Shown in pieces: positions 9,410 through 19,312 of a DNA stretch of 64,000 nucleotides (within the stretch, counting starts at the first letter, position 1; every line of letters starts with the position of its first letter). The notes below the pieces were generated by a model that did no database searches, was not told the origin of the DNA, and worked only from the letters and a program-made list of their open reading frames with translations. The stretch is from Zancudomyces culisetae HAW-14-8 (taxonomy: Eukaryota > Fungi > Kickxellomycota), in contig JBNJNM010000010.1 of assembly GCA_052426225.1 (NCBI GenBank), positions 434,001 through 498,000 on the forward strand, given 5' to 3'. The position numbers and the translations under genes are program-made.

Positions 9410-10498
9410 ATGTCCTCGATTACTCTCAAAGCAAGAACATTTGAAAACAGTTCGAATGGAAAAACTGCGGATTTAAAAATGCAGAAACAACTAACACAAT
9501 CTAACATTAATGGAAATTATATCGATGCAACTAGAAAAATAAAAGTATTTTTGGATGCAGGTGCAAATATTAACCATATAAAAAATACAGATCGAATACT
9601 GGCTAACGACACAATAGCAATTCTAGATTCGTCAATATGTTTAGCGCACTTTTTTCTATCGCTTATATACGATTATAGCCCCGAATCTCTGCTATTTTAT
9701 TTGGAGGCCAAATCATATAGCTCTAGAACCGATATGTCAAACAAAACTCTTAAATCATATGCACGCTTAATTTGGTCTGCATTTGTCTGCAGAGCGGCTG
9801 TACTGGAGATAAACATCACTTCAACAATGAGAAGCAAGATATTTGAAGATTTAAGCAGAGAAACTGTTTCCCCTGGTATCTTTCAGAAGGCACAATCACA
9901 TTCATACAGACTTTTAGAGTCTGCACTTATAAATTTTATTCAGAAGCCGGTTTACCAACATATGCTTGAAGACGTTGTTGAGCTGGCCAAATATCCTGGA
10001 AGACGGGAGCAGCTCCTAATTAACATTACTGCAAAGATTACAATAGCTTTATGGAAAACTTATGGCGTTCGAGTATTATCAAAATCAAGAAAGCTGGATG
10101 TTGAAACTATCATGGGAAATGAGCGAGATTTTACATCATCCGATCTGCGTACCTCACTTGAAGCTTGGGCCCAGCGCTTTGCATTTACACACCTACAGAT
10201 GCCACTTCCTACATACGATTCTGCGGCAGTTACTCTCGGATTTTCAATGCTGGATACCCACAAACAGAAAACCTCTCCTGCATCGTTAAATCTTAGAGGA
10301 AGTGAACCCTATTTGGGCTCTTCCGTTTTTGCCACTACAGAAACACTTACTATTCCTACGCATAAAATAGATGGAAGCACTGAGCAGTGCGAAAAAAATG
10401 AAAAAAAGAATACGGATGAAAGTGGCGGAAAATGGTTTAAAAAGGCTTCTATTCCATTTGGAAGTAGGTGGCTAAACAGATTCAGCAAAAAATCTTGA
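9410..10498 (+). CDS. RGS (regulator of G-protein signalling) domain protein
   Basis: RGS-fold motifs F...L..dyS.EsLlFyl, IWSAFV....lEINI...R, and iF..AQ...y.Ll...F.....Y. The true start may be the ATG at 9479. Confidence 0.85.
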   Translation: MSSITLKARTFENSSNGKTADLKMQKQLTQSNINGNYIDATRKIKVFLDAGANINHIKNTDRILANDTIAILDSSICLAHFFLSLIYDYSPESLLFYLEAKSYSSRTDMSNKTLKSYARLIWSAFVCRAAVLEINITSTMRSKIFEDLSRETVSPGIFQKAQSHSYRLLESALINFIQKPVYQHMLEDVVELAKYPGRREQLLINITAKITIALWKTYGVRVLSKSRKLDVETIMGNERDFTSSDLRTSLEAWAQRFAFTHLQMPLPTYDSAAVTLGFSMLDTHKQKTSPASLNLRGSEPYLGSSVFATTETLTIPTHKIDGSTEQCEKNEKKNTDESGGKWFKKASIPFGSRWLNRFSKKS

Positions 10499-13207: not shown

Positions 13208-14860
13208 ATGAGTACAGAGATTGGAATCCAAGCAATATTAAGGGGGATCAGGTCGATTCTCTCCTTGGTATACATGGCAGCTGCCGTAGTGTATATAGGC
13301 ACATTGCTAGTTGCAGTATCACCGCCGCTTTATAAATTTTCAAAAGATTTAAACAAAAAGTTTACAACCAAGGTTCAAGAATGGTTTATTGCAATGCTGA
13401 TCTTTTGCAGTATGGTCAGTGCACCATTCGATTTTATACTCACAGGAAATAAGAGTGTATTTGTAGACGAAGATAATAAAGATACAGATCCGAACAGTGT
13501 TAATATATTCTCAGAATCCGAATCCGCGATAATAATGGCTAACCATCAGGTTTACACCGATTGGATATACGTCTGGTAAGTACCATTTGCTTCTTTAATT
13601 TTATTTCTACTCATTTATATCTATAGAGTCAATGTAAATATATATATATATATACTGGAGGCTTGATAATATGTCGTTTAGGGCGGTTTCAAAGCTTCAG
13701 GGTTTAGATGGGAGAGTCAAAGTCTTTAGCAAGCACAGTGTTAAAAAAATTCCTTTTATAGGATGGTAAGTGATGGGGTTTCTATTTGTCTTGCTGTTTT
13801 TTCCCACTACTTTGAGTAAAAAACAGTTAGTGTGTGTATGGATGTACAAAAGCAATATTATACCATATGCTACTTTGTTCTAACACAAAAATATTCTGTA
13901 TATATTGATCACGAAAATGATAAAATAGGGTAAGTATACACTTTTTTTCTAACTATATTCATTGTGCTTCATTATCAGATTGATACATATTGAATTTCGA
14001 TAGCTATTACTCTCATTCTCTTAAAAATGTTGCATTATTTATTAACAAGTCGTCGGTTAAACCTGGTGTATTTTTAGGGAATGATCGTTCTTGAATTTAT
14101 ATTTTTAAAAAGAGACTGGGTGCAGGATCAACTTACAATCAAGCGGTACATGCAGAAGGTCAAAGAAGAGGGACATCCATTACTATTGCTTTTGTTTCCT
14201 GAAGGAACTACATTTGTAAAGGATAGACAGGTTAAATCGACTGCTATTGCGATCAAAGAAAATTTGGTAATGCACACGTTTCTAGATACATTCCACACTA
14301 ATCAACATTTACAAGCAATTTGCGGAGAGTAGTAAGACATTTAATATACTCAACTTATGCAAAATGTACTTGAATAGCCTGTACCGAAGCACCTTCTAGT
14401 TCCAAGAAGTAAAGGGTTATGGTTCATGCTACAAAACTCCAGAGGTATCGTAAAGTATGTGTATGACTTTACCATAGCGTACTCTGGCGTAAAAGAACAC
14501 GAATACGCGGAGCAAGTATATTCACTAAAGGACATATACCTTATGGGCAAGTATCCACATCAAATCCACATCCACATACGTAAGTTTGCCGTGGAAGATA
14601 TTCCTGAGGACGAAGGTGATTTTACCAGCTGGATCAGAGATAGATTTTACGAAAAGGACGAAATTTTGGATCATTTTTACAAAAACGGAAAACTTGTAGA
14701 CAACGAAAAGGATCCAGAGCTGCATTCTTGCATCAATCCATTTAAACTATCTACTCTTGCCCGCGAGCTTGTATTTTTAAACCTCACTGGCGTTATCTTT
14801 TTTTACCTGTTAAAAAAAGTAGTGCTTTTAATATTCAGATGCCTATTCACACTTTTTTAG
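13208..14860 (+). CDS. PlsC-family lysophospholipid acyltransferase (CST26/LCLAT1-like), 5 exons including a 1-nt exon
   Basis: Exons 13208-13575, 13682-13765, 13929, 14078-14266 and 14378-14860. Motifs NHQVYTDW (NHx4D), KKIPFIGWGMIVLEFIFLKRDW, LFPEGT, HLLVPRSKGL, YDFTIAY and F.EKD. Confidence 0.92.
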
Positions 14861-15032: not shown

Positions 15033-15584
15033 TCAGTGCCCAAGTTTATCGAAAACATGATAGATACTGTTTGTTTTGAATTCTTTTGGAGCTATCGCTT
15101 CGTCCTATGAGTTATGGTTATTATAGGGTTATAACTGCTGACAGTGTTTGAATATTAAACCAAGCAGGTTTATTTCTAGTAAACCGATTGATGCTTTAAA
15201 AATGTGTCTTTAAGAGTGGAAGGAAGTTCAAAAGTATAGACTTACAGATTGCTCCCGAAACACGCCAGTGAGTCTGAGATCCCTCTCCATCAACACTTTT
15301 TCCCAAGTATCTAGATTGTATCTCGGTGGCTATTTTTCATATTGTCGAGTTATCATTATTGTATTTTAATGACTAGTATTTTAAAAGGCACACGATTCAA
15401 AATATAGTGCATGAAGAAAACCCACCAAAAAAGATCTAGAATGTATATTTAAAGCCAAATAAAACAATGTACTTACCTTTCCGTTGTTTCTACGATGATG
15501 GACGAAATGGAAGCCGACGTTTGTAGCTGTGAACATTGCCACCATTAATCCCATAGGGATGATTGCTTCAAATGGAAGTGGCAT
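15033..15584 (-). CDS. NDUFA1: NADH:ubiquinone oxidoreductase subunit NDUFA1 (MWFE)
   Basis: Exons 15584-15477, 15329-15246 and 15104-15033 give MPLPFEAIIPMGLM...NNGKPPRYNLDTWEKVLMERDLRLTGVFREQSDEAIAPKEFKTNS..., the typical fungal MWFE sequence. Confidence 0.93.
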
Positions 15585-17587: not shown

Positions 17588-19312
17588 ATGACATTTGTAA
17601 GTAAATAAAACAATTCTACAAGGATAATGCGTAGATTTCGAGCCTAAGGTGTTGAAACAAGGGTAATAATGTAAAACTTTTTTTATACATCTAGTTAGAG
17701 CCAAGTCTGACACTAGAGAAAGCCAAGGAAGCAGTTAAAAACGGAGATGGAAACACGTTGCCGATATTTGTATCTATACCCTCAGATATGCTGACACCAG
17801 TTACAGCATATCTCAAGGTTTCAGAGAACTCGAAATACTCTTTCCTACTGGAATCTGTAACAGGAACAGGGGATGTATCCAGGTATTCTATGATAGGAAC
17901 AAGTAAGTTGCTTTGCTATTGTTTTTTTATTTTATATATTTTTTTTCAAATGACCTATATTTACTTTGTTGGACTTTGGAGAATTAAAGATTAATGAATT
18001 GGTATAAATAGATCCTCGAAAAATACTAAAGACAGGACCCGATCAGGAGGCTAAAGGCGATCCACTTTTGCACATAGAGAATGAATTGAAAAAAACAAAG
18101 TATATTAATGTCCAAGACTATAAGCTGTCCAGCATCACAGGTGGAGCATTTGGGTATATCGGTTATGATTGTGTACAGTATTTCGAACCCAAAACCGCGT
18201 GTGATTTGGAGGATAGTATGAATATTCCAGAAAGTATATTTATGTTCTGTGACGAGATCGTCCTGTTTGATAACCGCTATAAAATCGTGAAAGTTTATGG
18301 ACATTTAAGAATCCCAGAGGGATATAACAAAGATACAGACGAAAGTTTGTTGGAGCAACTATATAATGAATGTGTTGGCAGAATCTACAAGATAACTGCA
18401 ACATTGAATTCGGACAGAATTCCAACTCCACGTCAAGACAAAATACAACTAGGTGGAGAATATAAATCAAACACAGGAAGGGAGGGGTATAAATCCATGG
18501 TACAGAAGCTGAAGGAACATATAGTTAAGGGTGATATATACCAAAGTGTTCCATCACAGCGGATCACAAGAGCATCCAATCTACATCCATTCAACATTTA
18601 CAGGTACTTGAGAACGGTAAATCCATCACCATACATGTTTTATTACGACTTTGAGGATTTCCAGGTGGTTGGAGCATCACCAGAGCTTCTCGCACGAGTT
18701 AATCGTCGTAGGGTGGATAACCACCCGATAGCAGGAACCCGAAAGAGGGGCAGCGACGCGGAAGAGGACGAAAAGCTGGCTGCAGAGCTAATATCCGACG
18801 AAAAGGAGAGGGCAGAACACGTGATGCTAGTTGATCTGTCTCGCAACGATTTGAACAGAGTATGCAAACCAAACTCTATGAGTATAGACAAGGAGATGGA
18901 GGTTGAGTACTTTTCACACGTGATGCATATAGTGAGCAATGTTTCAGGTGAATTGAGAGATGACAAGACCTGTTTTGATGCCATAAGGTCTGTTTTGCCA
19001 GCAGGAACCCTGTCGGGATCACCAAAAGTCAGGGCTGTCCAGCTTATATACGAGTGCGAAAAGGAGAAGCGAGGAATATATGGGGGTGCTGTTGGGCATT
19101 TCCAGTATAATGGAAATATGGATACATGTATAGCTATTAGAACAATGGTGGTTAAGAACAACATGGTTTATTTGCAATCAGGAGCAGGTGTGGTGTATGA
19201 TTCTGATCCTGAGGCTGAATGGCAGGAGACATTAAATAAAGCCATGTCCAATTTGTATACTTTATCGAGTGCTGAGGAATACTACAAGAAACTTGAGGGA
19301 CAGCGTCAATAG
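17588..19312 (+). CDS. TRP2: Anthranilate synthase component I
   Basis: Exons 17588-17596, 17695-17902 and 18012-19312. Motifs LTPVTAYLK, SFLLES, NPSPYMFY, GASPE, PIAGT, KERAEHVMLVDL, PAGTLSGSPK and RGIYGG. Probable 5'-UTR intron 17394-17497. Confidence 0.97.

Follow-up and report, generated by a model that had tools for sequence, protein, structure and literature searches.

A one-nucleotide coding exon predicted in a lysophospholipid acyltransferase gene of Zancudomyces culisetae and recurring in other fungi

We describe a single guanine, at position 13929 of a 64,000-nucleotide stretch of the Zancudomyces culisetae HAW-14-8 genome (contig JBNJNM010000010.1, positions 434,001 to 498,000; hereafter the window, in which positions are given unless another contig is named), that is very probably a real and constitutive one-nucleotide coding exon of a lysophospholipid acyltransferase of the Psi1/Cst26/LCLAT1 type. 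We infer its splicing in Z. culisetae from comparison of genomic sequences. A one-base exon is found at the same codon in six genes, which belong to five genera and two phyla (Zoopagomycota and Mucoromycota). The proposal made earlier from the window alone (the sequence-only reading), namely that the reading frame makes this exon obligatory, holds: it is the only solution with a consensus donor, and it recurs in five other genes.

The acyltransferase gene occupies positions 13208-14860 of the plus strand and has 374 codons and a stop, or 1125 nt when spliced. Exon 1 (13208-13575, 368 nt, coding) carries N-terminal hydrophobic segments and AGPAT motif 1 (NHQVYTD). It is followed by intron 1 (13576-13681, 106 nt), which lies in phase 2 inside a Trp codon after motif 1, and by exon 2 (13682-13765, 84 nt), which ends in IPFIG and TG, the first two bases of a Trp codon. 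Intron A (13766-13928, 163 nt, phase 2, GTAAGT...TAG) leads to the single G at 13929, the third base of this Trp codon in the sequence PxxGWGM, shortly before motif 2, and intron B (13930-14077, 148 nt, phase 0, GTAAGT...TAG) leads on to exon 4 (14078-14266, 189 nt), which contains motifs 2 (EFIFLKR) and 3 (FPEGT). Intron 4 (14267-14377, 111 nt, phase 0) precedes exon 5 (14378-14860, 483 nt including the stop), which contains motif 4 (LLVPRS) and the Acyltransf_C domain PF16076. The open frame of exon 4 runs on to 14332, and its tail, 14267-14332, is intron; the splice sites of intron 4, a GTAATG donor at 14267 and an acceptor at 14377, are those indicated by homology. An intron at or adjoining the position of intron 4 is present in both paralogues described below and in Neoconidiobolus, Gigaspora, Rhizophagus and Blyttiomyces, and the position of intron 1 is common to Basidiobolus, Neoconidiobolus, Gigaspora and Rhizophagus.

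The protein searches were run exon by exon, each exon forming a separate row in the alignments, and not with the joined protein. On exon 5, PF16076 is matched with an E value of 2e-16; PF01553 is weak on the separate exon pieces (E 0.01-0.03), and reaches 1e-19 on full-length homologues. All four AGPAT motifs, as defined in PMC8753187, are intact in the predicted protein (HxxxxD, FxxR, EG and P), and exon 5 shows 46% identity to a protein from Trichomonascus with the name 2-acyl-1-lysophosphatidylinositol acyltransferase. Because of the motifs, the PF16076 domain and this match, we assign the gene to the Psi1/Cst26/LCLAT1 branch of lysophospholipid acyltransferases, for which sn-1 acylation of lysophosphatidylinositol would be the expected activity. 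Yeast Psi1 and Cst26 and animal LCLAT1 (LPLAT6) likewise combine PF01553 with PF16076 and carry the four motifs; the Z. culisetae genome, however, contains three divergent paralogues, and the tree leaves orthology to yeast Psi1 undecided. The best named database matches are Smittium and Linderina proteins. Downstream, on the minus strand from window position 15584 onward, the gene for the complex I MWFE (NDUFA1) subunit lies tail to tail with the acyltransferase gene. The same neighbour is found in two Smittium species and in Furculomyces, which supports the orthology of the acyltransferase genes. Further ordinary neighbours are an open reading frame with an RGS domain (PF00615) at 9410-10498 and an anthranilate synthase component I gene (PF00425, PF04715) at 17758-19312, both on the plus strand.

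The splice signals given by the sequence-only reading are exact in their coordinates: donor GTAAGT at 13766, AG at 13927-13928, the G at 13929, a second donor GTAAGT at 13930, and the next exon starting with GGA ATG ATC at 14078. As it had also pointed out, joining 13765 directly to 14078 shifts the frame and gives Trp, Glu and an immediate stop; one extra base is needed between the phase 2 end (TG) and the phase 0 start. In TAG/G/GTAAGT at 13926-13935 (slashes mark predicted splice boundaries), a single base stands between a canonical YAG acceptor and a GTRAG donor, and removal of the two introns in either order yields TG+G+GGA, that is, Trp-Gly. Both flanking introns are complete, with their own donors, acceptors and branch candidates. 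For intron A, the proposed branch site TTCTAAC lies at 13878-13884, with the branch A at 13883, 45 nt from the acceptor, and the AG at 13928 is the first AG after it. Intron B does contain the branch-like site and the acceptor that had been claimed for it (TATTAAC, 14040-14046), but this is a weaker candidate, since a closer AG is present at 14049.

To see what other solutions the sequence allows, we enumerated exhaustively all GT/GC-AG paths between the frames of exons 2 and 4. Every in-frame join by a single intron loses the KKIPFIGW motif and relies on a poor donor, and the in-frame acceptors upstream of 14077 all read into the TAG at 14075-14077. There are 13 two-intron joins between 13766 and 14077, among which the exon at 13929 alone combines a consensus donor with the spacing of the family: in the alignment, IPFIG and GMIVLEF of the homologues are separated by exactly one column (W). 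The frame enumeration and this spacing thus bear out the earlier statement that the G restores the PxxGWGM...FIFLxR motif.

Note that the splice motif is not rare in itself. About one match to a motif of the type TAG/G/GTAAGT is expected per 64-kb window, so that its presence is only modestly beyond chance, and a looser version has a probability of about 0.04 of occurring inside the 312-nt interval. A genome-wide search for a branch site followed by AG-N-GTAAGT gave 5 matches, against 6 in the control, and thus no enrichment of this pattern. Therefore, the case for a one-nucleotide exon rests on the comparison between genes. One of the genome-wide matches (branch site and TAG/G/GTAAGT at C23:396506-396544, minus strand) lies next to an open reading frame of the other strand and looks like chance. 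We take this open reading frame to be ribosomal protein S21-like.

The Z. culisetae genome contains three members of the family: the window gene and two paralogues, which we call L002 and L003. In L002 (C13:687289, minus strand), the series GC/GTAAGT, 107 nt, TAG/G/GTAAGA, 93 nt, TAG/ATC places a one-base exon at the same codon, and this is its only two-intron solution with consensus-like donors. The split codon is Ala (GCG) in this gene, with the G in the wobble position; that G is kept where any third base fits hints, in this one case, at constraint by the splice signals. At this junction, L003 (C10:1026042-1025951, minus strand) contains only intron A, in phase 2, and then continues with G-GGA. 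The 14 residues from the split codon to the Trp of the RxW (RDW) motif are kept in all three paralogues. Two smaller differences are that motif 3 of L002 reads YPEGY instead of FPEGT, and that L003, like L002 and other fungi, has a 26-nt exon (the IYTDWANLW segment), which is fused into exon 1 in the window gene.

For other fungi, score and taxon guided the choice of loci, which was made with no knowledge of their introns, and deposited proteins were mapped exactly onto the DNA. The sequence-only reading had suggested a search of related fungi for two introns one base apart, and such orthologues were found in four other genera, all with the junction pattern GGA-TG/GTA...TAG/G/GT(A/G)A...TAG/GG at the same codon. 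The lengths of introns A and B are 60 and 59 nt in Basidiobolus meristosporus, 62 and 63 nt in Neoconidiobolus thromboides, 98 and 276 nt in Gigaspora rosea, and 74 and 138 nt in Rhizophagus irregularis, in which three assemblies agree. Counting the window gene and L002, branch-like sites are present in 9 of the 12 intron halves, at 13-23 nt from the acceptor in the other fungi versus 45 nt for intron A of the window gene. The interiors of the six intervals have in common only short AT-rich matches of 11-19 nt. Genes of the other fungi with the one-nucleotide exon have as many as three further intron positions in common with the Z. culisetae paralogues, which indicates that they retain an old gene structure.

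In the Smittium, Furculomyces, Linderina and Entomophthora orthologues, there is no intron at this site and the junction is uninterrupted, so that these genes act as length markers; for Entomophthora muscae, the genome, compared with its Logan contig, has no intron at the junction. Intron A is the more widespread of the two introns, being present alone in L003 and in L006, a metagenomic locus of an unplaced eukaryote (2479-2541). L006 also has two other common intron positions, and possibly represents the outgroup state. The chytrid Blyttiomyces, the one chytrid examined, has no intron at either site and is uninformative on age. All 80 of 80 metagenomic loci were uninterrupted at the junction; both peptide patterns used span the intron positions, so that this sample is biased and silent on frequency. 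A tree built on the last exon alone leaves the backbone unresolved; it joins the window gene to Furculomyces and S. mucronatum at 93/89 (not starred), and does not place L002, L003 and L006.

Three other explanations of the junction have to be weighed. One is that the whole 312-nt interval is a single intron spliced with a one-base offset at non-canonical ends, the internal AG-G-GT being incidental. Donor A starts with G, acceptor B ends in G and the exon base is also G, so mature mRNA alone cannot separate this from a one-nucleotide exon, and in the window the internal motif by itself could be fortuitous, as calculated above. What separates the two readings is the conserved internal motif: TAG/G/GT(A/G)A is kept in six diverged intervals (multiplied over the five intervals other than that of the window, the chances come to about 8e-11), and neither of the single-intron controls, L003 and L006, contains it; an offset intron leaves this unexplained. 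Such an intron would also need TA-AG or GT-TA ends in six genes, in all of which both halves are equipped with a donor and an acceptor of their own, and most halves with a branch-like site. We consider it very unlikely. A different microexon is less likely still, although 12 other in-frame two-intron solutions exist on paper: a one-nucleotide T at 13831 (TAG/T/GTGTGT) or candidates of 13-67 nt. In each of these, either the donors are poor or residues are inserted at a place where the family lacks them. The T at 13831 has the donor GTGTGT and no branch site before it, and would put Cys in place of a Trp that is invariant in alignment A3; moreover, L002 offers a single two-intron solution, the G. 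Least credible of all, and in our judgement close to excluded, is the reading that the assembly has lost a G at 13765 or 14078, or that the gene is a frameshifted pseudogene. Runs of G are typical sites of indels, but the same one-base deficit with the same motif occurs in the paralogue on another contig, in four other genera and in seven other assemblies or loci; in addition, none of the four AGPAT motifs is damaged and, with its stop, the frame closes after 375 codons. There is also no need to invoke RNA editing or ribosomal frameshifting, since a canonical splice solution exists in six genes.

A sequence that resembles a transcript is available for a relative of Rhizophagus. Contig L016, from a metagenome collection, has 87-89% nucleotide identity to R. 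irregularis over the long exons. Introns 2-6 are missing from it, most of intron 1 is retained, and at the junction TG and GGT are separated by exactly one base. From this structure, L016 looks like partly spliced RNA.

The sequence-only reading had remarked that gene predictors usually miss such exons, and public gene models do indeed often break at this junction. In R. irregularis, the gene is split into two genes of 171 and 227 aa (XP_065993036.1 and XP_065993035.1), and several annotations of this species continue past the exon G into intron B (PIFGW-VRILT), with pieces of 171-192 and 218-239 aa. The model of Basidiobolus ranarum likewise reads into intron B (PIFGW-VNIY), and this W-V signature of read-through suggests that B. 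ranarum also has the exon. In the models of Gigaspora, Diversispora and Acaulospora, NHQ is followed directly by GMQ or GMR, the Bifiguratus model reads PIFG-LVC-GMQ, and the Mycoemilia model is possibly broken or mis-spliced at or near the junction. Other models contain the correct protein, for example, ORY05523.1, RIB20980.1 and PKY48579.1. A lipid acyltransferase is thus misrepresented in models of arbuscular mycorrhizal fungi, a group in which lipid metabolism is under close study.

As for the mechanism, the earlier suggestion that two short introns are removed one after the other is the most plausible, judging from the overlap of the splice sites. At a spacing of one base, the binding footprints of acceptor A and donor B would overlap, so that exon definition would not be possible: U1 pairing at the donor at 13930 (about -3 to +8) would cover the AG-G needed by the 3' splice-site factors of intron A, and the two sites could not be engaged simultaneously. 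Instead, two ordinary short GT-AG introns would each be recognized across the intron and taken out in turn. By analogy with the 9-nt exon of potato invertase (cited in PMC4674806), we lean slightly towards intron B being removed first. The genes of Basidiobolus (60+1+59 nt) and Neoconidiobolus (62+1+63 nt) offer compact test substrates for the order of events at overlapping 3' and 5' splice sites.

As for the history, parsimony would place both introns in the ancestor shared by Zoopagomycota and Mucoromycota; the crown age of Zoopagomycota has been estimated at 1,252-796 Ma (PMC12592215). A parallel gain of intron B at a G/G site is less economical. Origin by tandem duplication of intron A was rejected: this would leave an additional base, and introns A and B have no sequence in common. 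The exon would then be a leftover base between two neighbouring introns, for which a function of its own is not needed. It would persist for as long as the two introns are both present, being then required by the reading frame, and would vanish without trace once one or both are lost. If the arrangement was inherited, its conservation across two fungal phyla, over about 800 Myr or more, is deeper than in the published cases that we found, which are confined to land plants or to one genus. An exon of minimal size can thus last as an ancestral trait rather than being a passing stage, and the genes with both introns, with intron A only and with neither form a natural series for splicing studies.

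The sequence-only reading went further and took skipping of the exon to be a possible on/off switch for lipid remodelling through nonsense-mediated decay (NMD). This reading accepts the exon as real and makes its skipping, or the retention of intron B, a regulated switch; skipping and retention of intron A or of intron B each give a premature stop in all six genes, UPF1 is encoded in the Z. culisetae genome, and the arrangement has lasted hundreds of millions of years. However, such stops are expected after any frameshift or retention of an AT-rich intron. The six intervals contain no conserved intronic element beyond the splice signals, although this is a weak test in very distant species. 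Furthermore, both introns were lost in at least three lineages (Smittium/Furculomyces, Linderina and Entomophthora), L003 lacks intron B, and no skipped isoform was seen among the sequences compared; repeated clean losses argue against an essential switch. The claim is thus unsupported, the stop being a generic result of a frameshift, and we regard a regulated NMD switch as improbable. It is equally doubtful that the exon, at least about 800 Myr old, has been kept by selection because its two-step splicing serves as a regulated NMD checkpoint on an enzyme of membrane-lipid remodelling. If that were true, the exon, together with the candidate one of APC11 in the same genome (see below), would point to a set of ancient one-nucleotide exons in early-diverging fungi.

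The sequence-only reading called one-nucleotide exons extremely rare, citing Arabidopsis APC11. They are a known kind of exon, as it said, but the statement on rarity is somewhat dated. Thirteen are annotated in 13 gene models of Coprinopsis cinerea supported by long reads (PMC12230235); in the text of that report, these microexons are not described one by one and come without conservation analysis, unlike the exon here. Fungal spliceosomes thus handle one-nucleotide exons routinely. The closest precedent is CYP621A of Fusarium (PMC12940212, published in 2026), which is also fungal, internal and coding, with a G in AG/G/GT inside a conserved motif, and which was also argued from a phase mismatch with an intronless homologue as length marker. 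It differs in being a different gene, limited to one genus, whereas the exon here spans Zoopagomycota and Mucoromycota; in that its G is the middle base of a Gly codon rather than the third base of a Trp (or Ala) codon; and in that it is supported by reads from the species themselves, whereas the acyltransferase exon is known from genomic sequence.

In plants, one-nucleotide exons have been described in Arabidopsis APC11 (PMC4674806) and in VPS55 (PMC8831610). Like the acyltransferase exon, these are constitutive, restore the frame, are missed by annotation, and are lost in some lineages through intronless copies; sequential intron definition was proposed for APC11 with the same argument as here (PMC4674806), and its branch point lies 44 nt upstream, compared with 45 nt in the window gene. 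They concern other genes and another kingdom, were proven by mutagenesis or RT-PCR, and are conserved across land plants. In addition, VPS55 has regulated isoforms with and without the exon, of which the acyltransferase gene gives no sign. In a literature search of incomplete coverage, we found no earlier report of a one-nucleotide exon in the acyltransferase. What is new here is the gene, the depth across phyla and the broken public models; we do not call the exon the oldest.

The APC11 gene of Z. culisetae itself (C11:3987254; L101:1837-1622, minus strand) appears to need a one-nucleotide exon. At codon 7 it reads A/GTAATG...TAG/G/GTAAAC...TAG/C, with predicted introns of 77 and 138 nt; the G is the middle base of the codon, and the product is MKVTVK-S-WITVAAW. 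If this exon is homologous to the plant one, it would be older than the acyltransferase exon. A weaker in-frame alternative, an A in CAG/A/GTAAAA, is present 34 nt further on, at 3987220.
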